64,000 nucleotides of DNA from Blastocladiella emersonii ATCC 22665 (Eukaryota; Fungi; Blastocladiomycota), in NCBI GenBank assembly GCA_025594325.1, contig JANHCV010000012.1:1116001-1180000 (forward strand), given 5' to 3'. The notes beneath the pieces are model-generated. The model ran no database searches, was not told where the DNA came from, and worked only from the letters and a program-made list of their open reading frames with translations. The position numbers and the translations under genes were made by a program. Every line of letters starts with the position of its first letter. Position 1 is the stretch's first letter. Positions 21,455-40,220 of the stretch are shown here, piece by piece.

Positions 21455-22768
21455 CGTGGGCGATCAACGCCGCGCTGGCGTGCGATGGTCGTCGTTCGGC
21501 CGTCGCAGTGAGGCTCAGCAGCACGGGGAGAGAGAGAGCAAGCCCACGAGGGAGAGGACCCAGACCCAGGCCGCCAATTTCACGAGGGTGGCGGCGAGGT
21601 GAGGCGTTGCGGGCGGGCGAGTGGCGTAGCTCGGGCTCGCCGAGAGGAAGACCCAAGGTTGGCGACGGTCGGACGGTGACGGCAGCCGAGTGTGGCACAG
21701 CCGCGAGACGCTCAGTACAGGTGGCCCACGTTGGCCACGATAAGCGGCAGCAAACGTTTGTTCTGCGAGATCTGCACGATCGGAACTCGGACAGCGAGGC
21801 GACCACGGCGATGGCAGGTCGATGCGGCAAGTTGCGGATGAGCTTGAATTCGGTGCGGATGGAGGAAGGAGAGAGGGAGATCCCTTCCAGCAGCACACGC
21901 CACACGGGAGTTGCGAAACGGCCGCGGCCAATCGAATCTGAAACGTGCGGATCACATGCTTTTGATTGGAAGCGTGATATGACCGACGCGTCTCCGTCGC
22001 GGTCGAGACGACACACGCGAAGATGAACACCACTCACGCGCGAGAAGTAAGACGTAGATGCATGTCGGGCGAAAAAAAAAATCGTTACGCAGCAAGCGCC
22101 AATCGAGGCCCGCATCCGGCCTCGCATAAGGCTCGGGCGGGCTCGCGTGGGCTCGCCATGGTCTGTCGCAGGACCGCCGCGGGCCTATCCAAAGACATGA
22201 AGACGAAGCGCGGCGCTGCTTCCGGCGGCGACTTGTGGTGACGCGGGCAGCCGACACGCCGACCCGCATTCATCGCATAAAATGCGTAAATGAACTCCTT
22301 GACAATGCGTCCTCGGTTACCAACTTTACCTCAAAGCTAAGCAGCCTGGAGCTCGGTTGTTGCGTGGTCGCTCATTGGCTCGTTGGCGACAACAAGTACG
22401 TCTCGGGCGCGTATGTGTGTGCGCGCGCTATAAGCTGGGCCGAATCTGAGGCGATTGCAATCGCAAGCGTAGCTCCGTATGCCAACCTTGCCGAGTGAGG
22501 CCTTTTCGCCCAGTAAATTACGCGTTAACGAGATTGCGTGGGTGCAAGCTGCCACTTGGTCGCAAGTCGCTGGTACGATGGGTTCATCGCTCGCTTGTGC
22601 GCTCCCCATGTCCGGCATCTTCCTCGCTCGCGGGACGCACACGCGCAGTGGTACATCGCGCCAAATCAACTGTATCCGTCCCTTTAATTCATGTGCGGAG
22701 GAGGCATATTGGGGCAATGGTAGAAGGGTCCACGGCCATCACCAAACCGTGCCCCAGCCATTTGAAGT

Positions 22769-23021
22769 GGATCCATCTTGGATGCAGCCGTGGATTGGAT
22801 GGACCTTGGGGGGATGTGGATCGCGATATTACTTTTCTGGATCAAGCTTGGATCCAGCTTGGGCGAGCTCGATTAACCCGCAAACTGTGTGGACCTCCTT
22901 AGTGGATCCAGATGTTCGTCAAGCTGGATCTCGAGCCTGATCGAGCAGCGAATCCTCTTTGCCTCAGCGTGGATCACGCTAGGGATCAAGGTGTCGCTCA
23001 CGGCTCAATATATCCGGATCC
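22769..23021. repeat. Dense cluster of GGATC(C) motifs
   Basis: GGATC at 22769, 22818, 22839, 22850, 22904, 22926, 22971, 22983 and 23016 (nine in about 250 bp), plus related TGGAT/TGGAC words, in non-coding DNA. Confidence 0.6.
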
Positions 23022-31255: not shown

Positions 31256-31664
31256 TATACTCGCGTGTTCGGCGTTTCTTTGGATACGCAGTGAGCGCGA
31301 CGTCCCACTTGGCCATCTCAACGAGATCGTGAAGAGCACGAATGCCTCGGAACGATGAGCAGGCAAGGCTCGACTGAGTGGATCACGGCGAGAATCAGTC
31401 GCTCCCGAGCCGCAGGCCACTTTGCTGACACTTCATGTGCTTCATCCGTCTGGCCTGCTGCTCAGAACGGCCTCAACGCACCTCGTTGGCCATAGTCGCG
31501 CGACCCAGTCTCGACTTGAGCGCGGAGTTCAAACTGAGTGGCGGCGCCTCTATCGTGATCCGACGTGATGATCCGTTCGTGTGGCGTTTTGCTCGACTTG
31601 TCGACGACGAGACCGCTGGACTCGCAGCTCGCTCTCCTCGTCCCGCGGAAGAAATCCCGTCACC

Positions 31665-32262
31665 ATGTCAAACTCGAATGAAGGCTCCATGGAACAGATG
31701 AAGGACCGCATTTCGAAGCTGGAGCAGCTGGTGCAGGCGCAAGGCGCGCTGCTCCAGAAGCTCGAGCCGCTGCTGGCCCTCGACCCGGACACGGCCGTCC
31801 TGCGCCACCTCGTCGAGGCGGTCAAGCAGGACCCGCAGTGGACCGAGATCGAGGCGGAGGAGGCCCGCAAGCGGCATCGGGATGGTGTGATAACCGTGAA
31901 ATTCCGAGGTCCTGGCCATTTGGATCTCTTGGGTACTCCAGGTCCGAACAACGCAGCTCACCGCTGGTGCTCATCTTCCTTGTTTCCTTCACTCTCCCAG
32001 AGTTAAAAGCTAAGCGATGCTGCCGGTTTCGCGTTCTCGCTCGTATGGTGGCCGAAAGGCGCGGCGGCAACCCTTACGACTTGAAATTCATCCACCCTCT
32101 TGGTCACAGCCTTAACTATGACAGCGAATGGCCCCTGGATGAGGTTCGCTTCGTGTTTCAAACTCGGCCGATGATGACCACTAACTGTCTGGATTGACGT
32201 CCATGCAGCTGGAGATCGATGATTACGACGAGATTTGGCTGGAACGTGAGCAACTCGGCTGA
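31665..32262 (+). CDS. Coiled-coil/helical domain fused to a SUMO-like domain, copy E1 (154 aa, ends LEREQLG*)
   Basis: Exons 31665-31932, 32001-32143 and 32209-32262 splice in frame (465 nt). The C-terminus ...LKFIHPLGHSLNYDSEWPLDELEIDDYDEIWLEREQLG parallels the SUMO C-terminus (yeast Smt3 ...LDMEDNDIIEAHREQIGG). Confidence 0.75.
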
Positions 32263-32707
32263 ATCGCCCAACACCTTGATTTATGATGCTGGTCATCAAA
32301 TACAAATGCGTTTCATCATGAGTATCGACCGGCTGGTAATACTGCGCATACGTGCGCCGCTAAGGTACCTGGTGGCGCTGACGTACATTTGAAGGAACAG
32401 CACATGGCACAAGGGGTTAGAAGGCACGGCAAACTCGATTTTCGCGACGTCCAACTCTCAACGCCCCTAAGCGACTGTTTGCTGTGTCAGGGAACCGCTC
32501 CGTTGCCGTGTCACCGCAATTGGCGAACGGACAGCGCGCTGCGCCACGGCTTGATCTCGCGTGACCATGTCTCGCAATGTCTCGCACCCCGATGCAACGC
32601 GCAGCTCCCGCGATTAGGGTCGGGCCCAAACGTAGGCGGACTTTCTCCCTTCATTCGAACGCTGAATTGCACCATGCCGAAGCCGAACCCAGACTCGATG
32701 CAAAAAA

Positions 32708-33430
32708 ATGGAGGAGCGGCTTTCGGCCCTCGAGGAGAAATGGGTAGCCCTCGATCGCGACCAGAGCTCATGCATATCGAAAGTGCGGCAGCTGGAACGC
32801 GACACGTACCGCCTCCGTCGACGCGCGGAAGCAGGACGCTGTGCTGCATGCCATCGAACCGCTCGTGCAAAGCGATCCGAAGCTGGACGTCCTTCGCCAT
32901 CTGATCGAGGCGGTCAAAAAAGATCCCACCTGGACCGAGATCAAGGCAGAGATGGATGCTGAAGCGGCCCGAAAGGAAAAGGAGCAGCAGGACGGCACGA
33001 TTACTCTTGTCTTCGAAGGACCCGATCTGGATGACCGTTTGAGTACGCAACGAGGCCGCTCTCGTTCCGGCACGAATAAACTCACGCTCTGCACTGCATT
33101 GAAGAGATCATGGTCCATCCAACAGCCCCGTTCCCCACTGTCGCGGCATCTGTTTATAGTCGCCTCGACGTAAGACCTCAATCGATTGCCTTCATTCACG
33201 AGGGCAAGAAAATCAGCGAGTTTGACGCCAGGTCGTTGGAAAATGTGTGTTTTCGTGATTTTCCCGTATCGCTGCCCGCGCACCGGTTCTGAATTTTGAA
33301 TTCACAGCTTGAAATTATCGACAAGGACACCATTACGGTTTCCTACCACATTAGTGGTGGTGCTCGCGGCGGTGGCGGCCGTTCCGCTTGGGCAAGGCGT
33401 TCACTAGATCAGCGCCAATGTGACCATTAG
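32708..33430 (+). pseudogene. Coiled-coil-SUMO-like fusion, copy E2 (frameshift near 32828; ...SYHISGG + 22-aa extension)
   Basis: Same intron positions as E1 (33043-33104, 33245-33307). UBL segment IMVHPTAPFPTVAASVYSRLDVRPQSIAFIHEGKKI...LEIIDKDTITVSYHISGG. One frameshift in exon 1. Confidence 0.7.
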
Positions 33431-33600
33431 ATGGGTGATATAAGATAAAGCGGCGCTTGATTGATTGAGTGACGCAGGGAAACACGTCCCACGATGGTGC
33501 GCGGAGGAGACGCGCTGCGCCATGGCGTGATCGTGGCGCTCCGATTCGCCTGGTTTGTTCGCCGCCATCTCGTCGCCGCTCTCGAACCCACTCACCAAAC

Positions 33601-34159
33601 ATGAATGCCATGAGCCCGCCAACATCGCGACCTGGTGCAACGGCCCAAGCAGCCGATGTCCGCAAGCCCTCGGCCATTCCCGAGATCCGCGACGAGGACT
33701 TTGACTTCACGGGTCAGCTCATGCACATTGTCGACCTGCTCCAGTCGGGTGACCCGGCCAAGGCAGCGGATATCGGTGGCGCCGTACGATTCAAGATGAT
33801 GGTCTTTCAAGCGGAAGGACATTTCTGACCATGCTATGCAGGTGTACGAGCTCGAGGCCAAGTACGCGCATGCGCTCAAGATCCTCGACGCCATCCCGCA
33901 CGGCGACAAGTCACTCGACCAGATGCAGGCCATGGTCGACGAGCAGAACGTTAAGCTCGAGAAGCGGCGGTACGGCTCTGCTGACTCGAGTCACCTCCAA
34001 GTCGTGCCTGCACTGAAGGCCCGCTTCGTTTCTAGGGCCGCGTTCGAAGAGTACCAGCGGCTTATCACCAACCCGCCAGCCGTCGAGCTCGCTCCGCCAC
34101 CCTCGACGCTTGCCTTCCCGACCACCCCGGCGCCTCCTACCTCCCTCCCTGAACCGTGA
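33601..34159 (+). CDS. MED9: Mediator subunit Med9-like protein (exons 33601-33783, 33842-33969, 34036-34159)
   Basis: The spliced product FDFTGQLMHIVDLL...LEAKYAHALKILDAIPHGDKSLDQMQAMVDEQNVKLEKRRAAFEEYQRL follows the Med9 helix/(L/I)PG-x-D-x-S/coiled-coil pattern. Both introns are GT-AG and in frame. Confidence 0.6.
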
Positions 34160-34461
34160 CCTTGACCTGCCAACCTGCCGAGCACGCGGAACACGAAATA
34201 CGCCCTTGAGCGCGTGGAAGACCAATGCGTTGCTTATTGAGCGGAAGTTAGTCTCGAATTGTGCCGCGGGCGCTTGGAGATGGTCTCTAGTCGAGCTCTC
34301 AGGTTCAACCAGAGCCCACAGGCGGGACGAGAGACGCGTTTCGAATTCATGTGACTGGGCAGGTGATGAGCGGTGCCACAGCCGCGAGCGGGCTCAGCCG
34401 TCTCCTTGGAGGCCTCCGCACTCTGCGCTCTCTGTACCGACACTAGACACATGTTAAGCAA

Positions 34462-37400
34462 ATGGAGACTAAATGCAACGGACCCGGCAACTTGCTGACT
34501 ATAACGCCCACGAGCGCGACCTGGCTTGGAACGGGCCCGACTTTGCGGCCTTACGGCGAGGCCCGGCCCATGAACTTGCTTCGTTACCACGCCGTTGAGA
34601 GTCACAACACCCATAGCGTGCTCCTGTGCGAGGGTCGTGACCTGCGCAACGTCGGATGCACGCTACGTTGCGCTGAGCAGAGCGGCACCACGCAGCGCAT
34701 CGATTTCCACTTCCACGACTCGCAGCCCGAAGTCATTGCCCGCTGTCTCATGACCTTGCATGCGCTCCGGACCCGCGGCGGCGACCTAGCCGAGACCAAG
34801 CTTGCGACTTACGTCGCGCAGCTCACCTACTCGCAGGAGCTCGAGCCGCGTGTTGCCTCGTTCTGGGACACGGTTATGCTCCCATGCCTCGAACACGACT
34901 GGTTCGGTGCGACTGCTACCGTGCGTGTCCGCGACGAGAGCACACTTGAGCAGGTCCAGCGGTGCTGGCGCGCGTGGCTTGCCGTTGACTGGACGACCGC
35001 CGAGCTTGACAAGCATCGCGCCAAGGCGACGCCCGACTATTCCGTCGTGGATCTGGACGGGCACGACAATCATGCCGAGTATGCGCGCATCCACGAGCTT
35101 CGCAACCGGTACGGCGACGGGATGCCACGGACCTCACTCGCGCGGCTGACGTGCGCCGCGGGTCGATTCGCCCAAACCAAGGTTTGCTTTCTTGCGTCGA
35201 GCTCAACGCTCGAGGTCGATGAGCGGTGCGTGAACCCGACCATGCTCCACGTGCGCCACGACGAGTCCGTCGTATACATGGTCGCCCCCGATTTGCGTCC
35301 TTTTCGCGCCTTCTCGGTCGACTTTGATGGCGCGACGCGCGACTCGAGCATGCTAATCGAGATCCAGGACTGGCTTGGCGCGATTCGCCGCTGTTTGTGC
35401 ACTCGGCCAAATTCGACTAGCTTCACTTCCGGTTTGCCGCCCGGTTCCGTCCTGTCCACCATTACGTTCGGGTGCCGCAACGCCATGGAGTACCTCGAGG
35501 AGCTGATCGCCGACGTGGACTGTCGATTTGATGCCATCGATGCGACCGCGCTCGTCAACGACCACGGCTTGCTCAACACGTTGATCAACGGGTCCCCGCT
35601 GCTCAATGATCGCACGTACCGTAATCGCTCGCTACTCTTCACCGCTTGCCAGACCGAACACACCCGCAACCACCAAGACTACTTGCACTTCGCGACCGCG
35701 CTTCCTCTGGACCTGTTTCCGACGTTATTTGGCGTGGGCCTCGTCGAGTTTCTCAACGACCAGCACTGGACAAACTGGGTTCAACCGTTCATGTGGTCGC
35801 TAACGCATCAGCACCTGCTTGACGATCCGGGAGCCCAAGACCGGTCTGGTTTATTCAACCGGCACTTCACTTACACTTTCTACAAGCTGGAGGCGCCGGG
35901 TGCACCGGTTCAGCTCTCTGCTTCGCCTTACGTGCTCGACAGCCTCAAATTATGCGTCAAGGCGCTGCTTCTCGAGCGCAGCGCCATGGTCCAGCAACCT
36001 GGTACGCCATCCCATGATTCGCTGGCGTGGACCAGTTAACTGACCCCTTTACACTTTCGCATGTAGCTTGCGTCTTTACTACTGCCGCCTTCTTCCCGAA
36101 GCTCCTTGCCTTTGCTTTCGCGGCCGGTCGCTTGACGTGGTCAAGTTCTGCAGCGTACACCTCGCTCCCGTGGCCGGCGATGCCCGACCTCTGGCGTGAC
36201 ATCGAATCTTCTGTCTCCAAGACGCGGCTTCCCGAGCTCATCGCCCAGGCGCAGCTTTACGGCTTCCCGATCGAGCACGAGCTTGCTGACCCGTCCTCCG
36301 TGTGCCGCCTCGAGTGCGATTCCTGATTCTTGGAATGGTTTCCTCGGGGCGGGGCCGTGCTCGCGATCGCAGACGAGGTTCGTGCAGTTCGCTTTGACTC
36401 GTTGCACGTTGGGCGTCCAGCAAACGGGACTTTGGTCGCGGCGACCGCGTACGCGCCATGGAACTTCATTAAACGACCGCACGCACCGCACCGCGTCGAT
36501 CTTCAGGGTGCCGTGATCCCGGACTTTGATTTCGACAATGAGCAACAGCCCAACAGTGCCTCGTTCGCGCAATACTTGGCCACGAAGTCTCATATCTTGC
36601 CCGTTTCGCGCATGAATCCGACGCCCGTCCCCGTCTTTTCGCAGCGCGGTGCGATTGACGGGATTCTCGCTTTGGCGCATGAACGACGGCGTTTTCAGAG
36701 CCCGTTGTTGGTCCCCGTGCTGAGCCTGGTCGAGCACGCGTCGAGTGCCGTGCTTGTCCTTGATGTGTCCGGCCCAGATCCTCCAACCGTCGAGTACGAT
36801 ATTAGTCGAGATCTCTTCCGCCATAACAATATCGGTGGGTCCATTGTGCTTCGCGTCAACAACTCTAGGCGGATGCTGATGCTTCCGTTTCTCGCGTACC
36901 CGAAGCGCGTGGAGAGGGACGACGAAAAGCTTACCGCGACGGTCCATCTCACCAAGCTTCCATCGCTTGTCGACTGGTTTGTGTTCAACAAGCCCATTCT
37001 TCCGCGCTCTCACTTTTGGCCGGCCGCACCACTCTGGCGCGGTCAGCGGTCCATCTTGACCGCCATGACCCTTCTGACGCGCTACGGATGCCAGAACGAA
37101 AACATTTCGGTCCCTGATTGTTGCTGCCGATCTGCCAACATCGACTTTGCCATGACCCCGGGCATGGCGCACAAGCTTTCGATGGCATTGTGCCTTCTCT
37201 TCCTGAACCACGCTCTCGGGCACCGTGTGCTTGTTTATACCAGCTCTCACAGCCCCAAGGACCCGGTCATGGTGCTGGTGACGGGCGAGGCCTACCTCGT
37301 GGCGCCAGAGTACAACGAGCAGGAGCCGACGCCTGCGTTCCGATGCAGCGTGGTGTCGCCCTTGGCTACTTATGGGAAATCCGACGTGGTCGAGGTGATT

Positions 37401-37649
37401 GCTTCTATGAAGTCGGAGGCTCCAGAACTCGCAATCCACGCGAGCGTCATGGATAGCTCAGTGACCAGCATCTTTGCGGAGTACCTCAAGTTTTCCGCTC
37501 GTCCCACCCCTGGCGACGAGCCGGCCGCGCTGCTTGCATCCGCGGGCGACAATGTTCTGCACGCGGAGCTGCTCCCGCTGTTCCCTGTCACGGGCTCTTG
37601 GAAGCAGACCTGCTACGTGTGTTCGCCGCCGCGATCGTTTGAGCCGTGA
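34462..37649 (+). pseudogene. DUF4470-type protein (usually MYND-associated) with one in-frame TGA
   Basis: N-terminal PYGEARPMNLL...GRDLRNV...FHDSQPEVIARC resembles DUF4470. Intron 36002-36066 is in frame, followed by a single TGA at 36324-36326. It ends in CYVC with no complete MYND finger. Confidence 0.6.
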
Positions 37650-37911
37650 ACGCTTGAGTGAGATCGTAATTCACTAGATATATTCTAATTTTATTGTCCA
37701 ACATTGCACAAAAGGCTCGGATGTCGAGTGTATACGCGAACGCGACTGGCGCGAGACATCGTGAGACGCGACGAACAATCATGTGATGTGGCGCAACGCT
37801 CAATCGAGCGACTTTCCGTCCGAGCCGACATGCTCTGGCGAGCTGCCCAACAGTTGCATGTTGTGATGCCGAGACATTCAAATGCATTCGTTTGTCATCT
37901 ACAGCTGCCGC

Positions 37912-38097
37912 TCACTTCTGCCGCGACGCCGAATTCTCCGTTCCCGCCTCTGCCGCGCCCGCCTTATCGGCGCGGTACTCTGGGTCCTGCGCCGCGAACT
38001 GCTCGATGGCCTCGAGCTCCATGCGGCGCACGACCTGCGGGATGACGTTCCGCGCGTCCTTACCAGATGCGCTCCTTCCAAGTCCCAGGCTCTCGCT
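37912..38097 (-). pseudogene. Orphan terminal-exon-like coding fragment (SESLGLGRSASGKDARNVIPQVVRRMELEAIEQF...RQK*)
   Basis: 62 codons with very high GC3, preceded by a TTTCGTAG acceptor-like site. No upstream exon identified. Confidence 0.35.
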
Positions 38098-38121
38098 CTA
38101 CGAAAGTAATACCCAGCAATC

Positions 38122-38821
38122 ATGTCAAGTTCGAACGCAAACCGCATGCAACAGTTGGAGGAGCGCCTTGCACGGCTCGATGAGCGAACGACGAGTTATG
38201 GAAAGAGCCTCAACCGATGCTCGTCGCAAGTAGAGCACCTGGTTCACACCGTAGCCCGTCTCCGCCGTATATCGCGGAAACAGGCCGTTGTTATGGACGC
38301 ACTCGAGCCGCTCATGCATTCTGACCCAAAGTTGACCGTCCTGCGCCATCTGGTCGACGCAGTCAAGTCTGATTCCGCTTGGGACGCGATTGAGGCGGAA
38401 ATAGACGCTGAAGATGCGCGTAACCAGCACAATCACTGTCGTGCTCGTTGGGCCTGACAGCGATGACCGATTGGGTACGGAACATCCAAAACAGTCTCAA
38501 ACTTGCTCGCTCGTGCTCACGCTCCCATCGCACACTTCTAAGAGCTTCATGTCGGCCCGAATATCCATTTCTCTAAGCTCGCAGCACTAGCATACGAGCG
38601 TCTCAGCGTGGGGCCCAGCGAAGTAAGGTTCATTTCACCTGACGGCGATTCGCTTCGCGACTACAACGGGGCATCGCTGGAACAGGTACGTTCGGAGACC
38701 ACGCTTTTCCTCGCTCAGGTCTGACGCAAACTTCGGTCGCCTTCGTGCGTAGCTTGACATCCATCACATGGACGTAATCATGCTCAATCACATACAGAGC
38801 GGCGGTTCCCCTTCCAGCTGA
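38122..38821 (+). pseudogene. Coiled-coil-SUMO-like fusion, copy E3 (frameshift near 38428; ...NHIQSGG-SPSS*)
   Basis: Introns 38475-38542 and 38686-38752 are at the same positions as in E1/E2. UBL segment ELHVGPNIHFSKLAALAYERLSVGPSEVRFISPDG...LDIHHMDVIMLNHIQSGG. Confidence 0.7.
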
Positions 38822-38933: not shown

Positions 38934-40220
38934 TCATGCGGCGTCGGGAAAGCTGGCCTTATGCTCGACCACCTGATCACGGACGGCCGTGTATAGCTCC
39001 ACAAGCGGCCGAACCTTCATGAGGTCCTCGGCAGACATGAGGTGCCGCTCGGCGTTCCACTTTGCGTGCGAACGGTACGCCTCGCATCCGGAACAAGTAC
39101 ATTCGAAGGCCTTGGTCGCCTCGAGATCAAACTTGGCCTGGAGGAACGCGACCTGGAACCCAAGGTGTCGCTCCAAGTCAAGGGCTGCCGCGAGCTCCTC
39201 GTACTCGTCTGCAGAGACGTAGTGGAACCAGTAGCCGTGGTTCACAAAGTCCTTGTCAGGGTACCCGACGTGGTGGCCCCACGAACGCAGTGGGCCGAGC
39301 GTCGACTCCGCGGCGGCGCGAGACGGATACAGCGCGAGGCACTCGGATGGGGAAGTCGTGCGCGTGGAGGGCGCGTGGTACACGGCGATCGGCCTGTGCA
39401 GGTCGGGCTCGCGAGGAAGCAGCGGGACGCGGCAAGCCAAGTACAGGTCTCGGTCAACAATCGCGGACTTGAGCGCCGCGTCGGGCCCGAGCAGCTCGTC
39501 AATCTTCGCGACAAAGTTGCTGCGGTGCACGCGGCGGACTTGAGCGACCAACTCCTCGAACGTAAGCCGATGCGCCATGCGACAGCAGTCGAAGCAAGCG
39601 ACTTGCGACTCCTTGAAATCTTGCTTCAGGTGCGGTTTGAGGTGGCCGACGGTCGTCTGGCCAAAAACGGCCGCGCCGCCGTACGTTTCGAAAACCTCGG
39701 CAGCAACTCGCGGAAACATATCGCAAATGAAGCACCGAAGCGGAGCTTCGCGCGGGCTCAGGTGCGCGTTCGTGATAGCCGCGAGCTCGAGCGGGCGCGC
39801 GCCTGCCGAGTAACGCTTGGCATGGTCGGCGGCGGACGGAAGCGGCACGTCGTCCCTGCACCGCGAAAACGTGAAACGGTTGAAGATGGACTTTAACTTC
39901 GAGTCAAAAGCGAGGAGCGGCAGGTTCGCCATCATGCGGCGGCACCACTCGCAGCAGGGCAGGGCGTTGTGGCACGACAGGGCCGAGCAGCTCCAAGGGC
40001 GGTTGATGCCATGCGAGGCGCCCGCGGGCGGTGGCTGGAGGCAGTAGATGCACAGGGCGCCATAATAACGAGCAAGAAACGGGAGATCGCTCAGGACGAC
40101 GCGCGAGTCGAACGCGTCTGCGACGACGCGGCGCAGCCACGCGGCGACGACCGAGTCCTGGACAGGCGCCAACGCGGCATCGAGTTCATCGGCGGATACT
40201 TTGCAGCGAGTTTGATCCAT
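38934..40220 (-). CDS. Intronless 428-aa protein with two degenerate HNH-like zinc modules and a NUMOD1-like DNA-binding motif
   Basis: Module 1 (aa 57-112): CIYC...GINR...NALPCCEWCRRMM...F. Module 2 (aa 163-231): CFIC...TVGHLKP...VACFDCCRM...TFEEL. Residues 275-334: RPIAVYH...ALYPSRAAAESTLG...GYWFHY. Confidence 0.65.
   Translation of the reverse strand: MDQTRCKVSADELDAALAPVQDSVVAAWLRRVVADAFDSRVVLSDLPFLARYYGALCIYCLQPPPAGASHGINRPWSCSALSCHNALPCCEWCRRMMANLPLLAFDSKLKSIFNRFTFSRCRDDVPLPSAADHAKRYSAGARPLELAAITNAHLSPREAPLRCFICDMFPRVAAEVFETYGGAAVFGQTTVGHLKPHLKQDFKESQVACFDCCRMAHRLTFEELVAQVRRVHRSNFVAKIDELLGPDAALKSAIVDRDLYLACRVPLLPREPDLHRPIAVYHAPSTRTTSPSECLALYPSRAAAESTLGPLRSWGHHVGYPDKDFVNHGYWFHYVSADEYEELAAALDLERHLGFQVAFLQAKFDLEATKAFECTCSGCEAYRSHAKWNAERHLMSAEDLMKVRPLVELYTAVRDQVVEHKASFPDAA

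Follow-up and report, generated by a model that had tools for sequence, protein, structure and literature searches.

The window analysed here, 64,000 nucleotides (nt) of Blastocladiella emersonii ATCC 22665 (assembly GCA_025594325.1, part of contig JANHCV010000012.1), contains three dispersed paralogous loci, termed E1 (31665-32262), E2 (32708-33430) and E3 (38122-38821), in which a conserved helical module precedes a domain descended from SUMO. Together with two further copies, F1 and F2, at a paralogous locus, they are interpreted, with a probability of about 0.55, as a lineage-specific birth-and-death family of SUMO-derived domains carried on an oligomerising head, whose members, if functional, would serve as non-covalent SUMO mimics or adaptors. 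The novelty lies in the conserved orphan coiled-coil/helical head on a SUMO-like domain; expansion of SUMO paralogs is itself already known in plants.

Gene structure of the three loci

The assembly (JANHCV) comprises 21 contigs with a total of 34.27 Mb, obtained from PacBio HiFi reads with Illumina polishing and annotated ab initio by funannotate (PMC9730499). Models of the three loci were rebuilt by hand, through direct reading of the letters and translation of all frames. A single protein was recovered at each locus only once two short introns had been removed. All six introns are of the GT..AG type and 62-68 nt in length, and at each locus a phase-1 intron is followed by a phase-0 intron, so that the identical three-exon structure proposed in an earlier sequence-only reading is reproduced by the rebuilt models. 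Most of the six display a GTACG-like 5' end, and in most a branch-like CTNAC motif (CTCAC, CTAAC or CTGAC) is located 20-40 nt from the acceptor. The spliced products of E1, E2 and E3 are colinear, as are those of F1 and F2, and the copies have a common layout that consists of a heptad-repeat helix, a conserved helix-loop-helix block, a charged linker and a C-terminal domain of approximately 80 residues.

E1 is an uninterrupted open reading frame (ORF) of 154 residues, with start codon, reading frame, both splice-site pairs and branch-like motifs all undamaged. Its exon 1 (31665..31932; all three loci lie on the forward strand) opens with the ATG at 31665, encodes the heptad helix (residues ~9-37), the helix-loop-helix block (residues ~33-60), the charged linker and the first SUMO-like strand, and ends in phase 1. 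Intron 1 (31933..32000, 68 nt, GTACTC..CCCAG) is followed by exon 2 (32001..32143), which contains the SUMO-like core of strand 2, helix and strands 3-4. In intron 2 (32144..32208, 65 nt, GTTCGC..TGCAG) the motif CTAAC lies 24 nt before the acceptor, and exon 3 (32209..32262) supplies the last strand and the tail EREQLG-stop, with one terminal glycine and no Gly-Gly.

In E2, comparison with the 5' ends of E1 and E3 places the ancestral start at ATG 32674, followed by a run of seven A residues (A7) at 32702-32708, the two spanning 32674..32708. Exon 1 (32708..33042) has a +1 frameshift at ~32820-32825, inside the heptad helix. Exon 2 (33105..33244) encodes the SUMO-like core, in which FIHEGKKI matches the FLFEGQRI stretch of SUMO1, and exon 3 (33308..33430) encodes the last strand and HISGG, after which comes a Gly/Arg-rich tail of 22 residues. 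Exon 1 of E3 (38122..38474) encodes a heptad helix at residues 9-65 in a single register and the conserved block; its linker contains a +1 frameshift at ~38422-38425, and the SUMO-like frame downstream can be read from the ATG at 38414. Exon 2 (38543..38685) again holds the SUMO-like core, and exon 3 (38753..38821) the last strand, IQSGG and a precursor-like SPSS-stop. The three C-terminal ends read earlier from the letters (EQLG-stop, ISGG plus 22 residues, QSGG plus SPSS) were all found in the spliced models. The description of the three paralogs as sharing a diglycine end stands for E2 and E3, both of which are broken, and fails for E1, which ends in Leu-Gly-stop.

No additional family copy was detected in the 64-kb window by tblastn and a hidden Markov model (HMM) of the family applied to the six-frame translation. 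One candidate fourth copy at 22753-22857 (tblastn E value 0.048) was rejected, as the family HMM did not recover it.

Origin of the C-terminal domain

A profile of the three spliced domains was compared with PDB sequences. From the 155 matches at E values up to 10, the best 60 were all SUMO, with E values of 8e-11 for tandem SUMO2 and of 6e-6 to 2e-3 for single SUMO chains, and the alignments to SUMO1 chains extended from strand 1 through the terminal Gly-Gly. When the three-sequence profile was restricted to exon 2, ten PDB matches were obtained; redesigned ubiquitin (E value 0.036) and SUMO1, the latter with four entries, ranked top. Among Pfam families, PF11976 (Rad60-SLD) was matched by the spliced domains of E2 and E3, the best E value being 2.2e-4 (E2); E3 scored 19.2 bits (E value 0.0011) over profile positions 1-68 of 72, against a gathering cut-off of 23.8 bits. 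A Pfam search of the single exons found nothing. A word-indexed search of a 5.8-billion-protein database with exon 1 of E1 and with the family alignment gave no match, scores at the level of SUMO being unable to reach significance there.

The predicted structure leads to the same fold. In the AlphaFold2 model of full-length E1, calculated from a four-row alignment, residues 73-150 have a predicted local distance difference test (pLDDT) score of 76-89 and adopt the order strand, strand, helix, strand, strand, strand. The part encoded by exon 1 contains helices at 4-39, 44-54 and 61-72, for which pLDDT is 51-73, and a strand at 75-81. A Foldseek comparison of this model with the PDB returned SUMO/Smt3 nearly throughout the top 50, with template modelling (TM) scores by target of 0.77-0.88, root mean square deviations (rmsd) of 1.3-2.4 Å and 22-28% identity; matches to AlphaFold DB clusters agree with a SUMO-like fold. 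The model of the E3 domain, from a two-row alignment, is weaker (mean pLDDT 61.6) with the same topology, and SUMO1 was ranked first. The SUMO-like character assigned to this domain from the letters is thus borne out both by the profile matches and by the predicted beta-grasp fold, and we conclude that the C-terminal domain descends from SUMO.

The N-terminal module

In the N-terminal helix, hydrophobic residues occupy the heptad a and d positions in one register. The heptad score of E1 (0.78) was reached by 0 of 500 shuffled sequences and that of F2 (0.78) by 1 of 500; in E3 a single register extends over 57 residues, with a score reached by 28 of 500 shuffles. The coiled coil that had been proposed therefore has a real heptad pattern behind it, situated in E1 in the predicted helix 4-39, and a helix of this kind probably oligomerises as a coiled coil. 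The helical block that follows (LEPL..DP...VLRHLV.AVK.D..W) is equally real: an alignment of exon 1 from the three loci leaves 21 columns invariant, and the block is strongly conserved although the copies are otherwise only 30-40% identical.

A HMMER profile of the conserved block was searched against 1.84 billion representative proteins and gave one match, the 604-residue protein P0001 (E value 1.5e-14), which comes from the same assembly and contig as the window. Outside this same-genome protein, no relative of the N-terminal block was found among those representative proteins, and a feature search of the ESM Atlas with the N-terminal module returned sub-threshold, nameless matches only. The N-terminal module is an orphan. 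The family had earlier been called undescribed, which holds for this module, with a gene model from the same genome as its sole match; the domain behind it is itself derived from SUMO.

C-terminal ends and the Ubc9-contact position

The C-termini of the copies differ freely: LG-stop in E1, VG-stop in F1, SGG plus a tail in E2 and E3, and WWGEDGKP-stop. In the window, Gly-Gly is present only in E2 and E3, both frameshifted, and E1 is one residue short in the alignment; its single-glycine end is common to F1. Loss of the terminal glycine abolishes activation of a ubiquitin-like protein by the activating enzyme (also termed E1, and distinct from our locus). A second position of interest is Glu67 (E67) of SUMO1, which we take to be a contact with the back side of Ubc9, and at which E380 of Rad60 and D394 of NFATC2IP are presumably placed. 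It is through this acidic residue that the second SUMO-like domain of Rad60 (E380) or NFATC2IP (D394) binds the back side of Ubc9, and the residue is needed for that binding (PMC11065178). By profile alignment alone, the equivalent residue is Leu in E1, Phe in F1, Glu in E2, and Asp in E3 and F2. These ends and this residue make a conjugatable ancestor of E2 and E3 plausible.

Frameshifts in E2 and E3

Four DNA sequencing runs of the source sample (X1-X4) were compared with positions 32700-38690, and k-mer contigs were assembled de novo from X1, X2 and X3. Over 32700-33597 and 38037-38690 these contigs, with word depths of ~6, 46 and 160, respectively, showed 0 differences and 0 gaps relative to the window; minor alleles are hidden by contigs of this kind, and the sample is the same as that of the reference. 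Since the independent contigs are identical and the HiFi reference was polished with Illumina reads, assembly error is excluded, and the frameshifts of E2 and E3, for which the sequence-only reading had left both possibilities, are genuine. An overlooked frame-restoring intron was likewise rejected, as each shift is flanked on both sides, at a distance of a few bases, by conserved residues.

The shift of E2 at ~32820-32825 sits between ..RLRR and ARKQD... Comparison with the 5' ends of E1 and E3 reveals a second, upstream shift in E2, an extra base in the A7 run, so that ATG 32674 is out of frame with ATG 32708 (coordinates 1 and 2 modulo 3, respectively). E2 therefore carries two frameshifts, E3 one and E1 none; a single exon-1 frameshift in each of E2 and E3, as reported earlier, is correct for E3 and one too few for E2. 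All three shifts are in the +1 direction.

Two side observations concern the same regions. The ATG at 38414-38416 of E3 spans two codons and opens the SUMO-like frame just before strand 1 by chance; on paper, the broken E3 could encode a separate 90-residue SUMO-like protein ending in Gly-Gly plus SPSS. Contig ends at 32884 and 33516 (runs X4 and X1) enter loxP-like and 454-type adapter sequence, and library adapters are therefore present in some of the older DNA runs of the sample.

The paralogous locus and family turnover

The 23.8 kb of DNA around P0001, termed L001, contains the two further family members. F1 (L001 2278-2921) ends in ELVG-stop, with a single glycine like E1; its coil is scrambled by two compensating indels, substitutions are found at conserved positions of the block, and the acceptor of its second intron has changed from AG to AA. 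F2 (L001 9968-10773) has TTG in place of its start codon, no Gly-Gly at its end, and a longer linker with a probable extra intron. Exon 1 of F2 (L001 9966-10153) is 91% identical to that of E1 (window 31663-31850), and the sequence upstream of F2 (L001 9662-9742) is 84% identical to that upstream of E2 (window 32534-32614). A mosaic origin of F2, through recombination or gene conversion between paralogs, is indicated by this combination of an E1-like exon 1 with an E2-like upstream region.

Ratios of nonsynonymous to synonymous substitution rates (dN/dS) in pairwise comparisons are mostly 0.16-0.6, with dS often saturated. The ratio is 0.16 for E2-E3 and 1.0 for the SUMO-like part of E1-F1, the latter fitting decay of F1. 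Branch lengths from pairwise dN assign most of the N-terminal change between E1 and F1 to F1 and little to E1. This pattern fits a family under past constraint, individual copies of which have been released and are decaying.

No separate gene model exists for any of the five family members seen. P0001 is a product of ab initio prediction (L001 10001-13774), in which exon 1 of F2 is joined to a neighbouring DUF4470 gene through junction introns of ~900 and 660 nt, compared with introns of 62-84 nt in the family. The ~900-nt intron is implausible given those family introns, and the P0001 gene model is probably a misannotation.

Neighbouring sequences

L001 11762-15507 matches window 34319-38066 at 94%. 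Within the latter, contig depth over the DUF4470 block at 34319-37585 is ~1.7-fold that of the flanking sequence, and a variant contig from run X1 shows 44 differences and 5 gaps; the borders of the repeat are marked by loose contig ends at 37763, 37793 and 38066. The DUF4470 block is a segmental duplication present in at least two, probably three, copies. Between E2 and the DUF4470 gene lies a small coding region (33503-34214; ORFs 33469-33828 and 33836-34159), 88% conserved with L001 10933-11648; the region matches no Pfam family, and the P0001 model incorporates it. An intronless ORF of 428 residues, convergent with E3, occupies 38934-40220 on the reverse strand; its Pfam match to an E6-like zinc-binding domain is weak (E value 0.0018), and its exact product is absent from the public gene collection. 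A link between the family and its neighbours was considered and rejected: they are the DUF4470 gene and the ORF with the weak E6-like zinc-binding match, and no SUMO-pathway gene is adjacent.

Comparison with known systems

The family shares its fold and descent with SUMO, yet it fails the defining features of the systems it most resembles, namely Gly-Gly in the intact copy for SUMO and tandem domains for Rad60, Esc2 and NFATC2IP (NIP45). With SUMO/Smt3 it has in common the beta-grasp fold, on which the E1 model superposes at the TM scores given above, the Q/S-G-G end with a short precursor-like tail in E2 and E3, and a retained F-x-x-[DE]-G stretch and helix 1 arginine. It differs in that the N-terminal extension of 72-100 residues is structured, comprising the coiled coil and the conserved helical block, whereas in SUMO it is a tail both short and disordered; sequence identity to SUMO reaches only 22-28%, and Pfam gathering scores are not reached. 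Moreover, the sole intact copy, E1, ends in a single glycine, and the family comprises multiple copies that evolve fast and are often broken, in contrast to the high conservation of canonical SUMO.

Rad60, Esc2 and NFATC2IP likewise carry SUMO-like domains (PF11976) at the C-terminus of a larger protein, use them without conjugation and, like E1, have no Gly-Gly there. However, theirs are two domains in tandem and every copy here has one, the N-terminal module is unrelated, and at the Ubc9-contact position E1 appears, from the alignment, to have Leu. Among the AlphaFold DB predictions, N-extended SUMO-like proteins such as A9V7H8, T1KGF4, A0A078B9T5 and A0A0L0F3I9 also place a C-terminal SUMO-like domain after 55-110 partly helical residues, but rmsd rises to 10-21 once the N-terminus is included, and none was recovered by the conserved-block profile. 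In angiosperms, SUMO tandem duplicates represent a lineage-specific expansion of SUMO paralogs; tandem and segmental duplication has reportedly produced divergent paralogs there as it has here, but those paralogs are free-standing and SUMO-sized, without the conserved orphan coiled-coil/helical module of the present family (PMC6680281).

Interpretation and alternative explanations

The explanation favoured here is that an ancestral SUMO gene gained an N-terminal module composed of the heptad helix, the helix-loop-helix block and the charged linker, which would since have preceded a single SUMO-fold domain, itself interrupted by two introns. The family would spread by tandem and segmental duplication accompanied by gene conversion, with copies that decay quickly. 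E1, if expressed, would most likely act without covalent attachment: an oligomeric stalk could display several SUMO-like domains and so resemble a SUMO chain, and/or E1 could be an adaptor whose specificity resides in the conserved helical block. A non-covalent mechanism is best supported because E1 is one glycine short, the acidic residue equivalent to E67 is, by alignment, absent from E1 and F1, and the copies with Gly-Gly are pseudogenes. The modifier envisaged by the sequence-only reading, conjugation of which would graft a coiled coil onto targets, finds no intact example here, as the Gly-Gly copies E2 and E3 are frameshifted and E1 is short. Its second suggestion, a SUMO decoy, fits the intact E1 without Gly-Gly better. 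Gene structure, SUMO-like fold and profile similarity, heptad pattern, frameshifts and the orphan N-terminal module are observed here; oligomerisation, non-covalent action and expression are inferred.

Several observations weigh against this explanation. Lesions are present in four of the five copies seen, and the whole family could be decaying. The PF11976 matches of E2 and E3 fall below the gathering score, and full-length E1 has no Pfam match even at an E value of 10. The AlphaFold2 alignments are shallow (2-4 rows), with the N-terminal helices at pLDDT 51-73 only. The genome annotation is ab initio, and both transcription and introns of E1-E3 are predicted. Furthermore, E2 and E3 keep the precursor layout of Q-x-G-G plus tail and the acidic residue of the Ubc9 contact, and their ancestor was therefore arguably conjugated.

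In an alternative explanation, no copy would be functional today, and E1 would be one of several duplicates in decay that segmental duplication has carried with it, intact only by chance or youth. The damage to four of the five copies (frameshifts in E2 and E3, AG to AA at the F1 acceptor, ATG to TTG in F2) is in keeping with this, as are the ratio of 1.0 for the SUMO-like part of E1-F1 and the fact that E1 is unannotated and has no homolog found in protein databases. We nevertheless consider it unlikely. Conservation of the helical block is strong even though identity between the copies is otherwise only 30-40%, dN/dS is below 1 in most pairs, the N-terminal change between E1 and F1 falls mostly on the F1 branch while E1 is slow there, and the ORF, start, splice-site pairs and branch-like motifs of E1 are intact. 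Somewhat less probable still is a true conjugatable modifier, the intact Gly-Gly members of which would be cut by Ulp and attached together with their coiled coil, E2 and E3 having been killed recently and E1 being a derived, non-conjugatable offshoot. Such a history would account for the Q/I-S-G-G ends, the short tails like those of SUMO precursors and the acidic residue equivalent to SUMO1 E67 in E2 and E3, as well as for their otherwise undamaged SUMO-like exons and splice sites and their mutual dN/dS of 0.16. Neither the window nor L001, however, contains an intact Gly-Gly copy; the C-termini vary freely, unlike a tail selected for the E1 and E2 enzymes of conjugation; and the low dN/dS values are rough, with dS saturated.

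A bolder version, which we regard as very unlikely, combines both kinds of action: intact Gly-Gly coiled-coil members elsewhere in the genome would be truly conjugated, their attachment would graft an oligomerising stalk onto targets and thereby cluster substrates, and single-glycine forms of the E1 type would co-assemble with them via the coiled coil as non-conjugatable regulators. Least credible of all is that the frameshifted copies are in fact split genes, E3 for instance providing a 111-residue coiled-coil protein and a SUMO-like protein from ATG 38414, or that the +1 shifts are bypassed in translation. Although the SUMO-like frame read from that ATG starts exactly ahead of strand 1 and all three frameshifts are +1, a downstream ORF in a eukaryote would need re-initiation or a promoter of its own, none of the three shifts shows an evident slippery site, an ATG of this kind is missing from E2, and three shifts in the same direction are expected by chance one time in four.

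Significance

The published ab initio annotation misses the family and needs correction, because at L001, the single paralogous locus studied, a family exon has been joined to an adjacent gene. Should E1-type proteins be expressed, they would be compact, genetically encoded, multivalent mimics of SUMO, and would bear on the engagement of SUMO-chain readers. Few eukaryotic proteins are normally as conserved and as restricted in copy number as SUMO. In B. emersonii, SUMO-derived domains have multiplied, diverged to ~25% identity, been fused to an orphan head and repeatedly decayed, which makes the family a natural experiment in the repurposing of a modifier fold.

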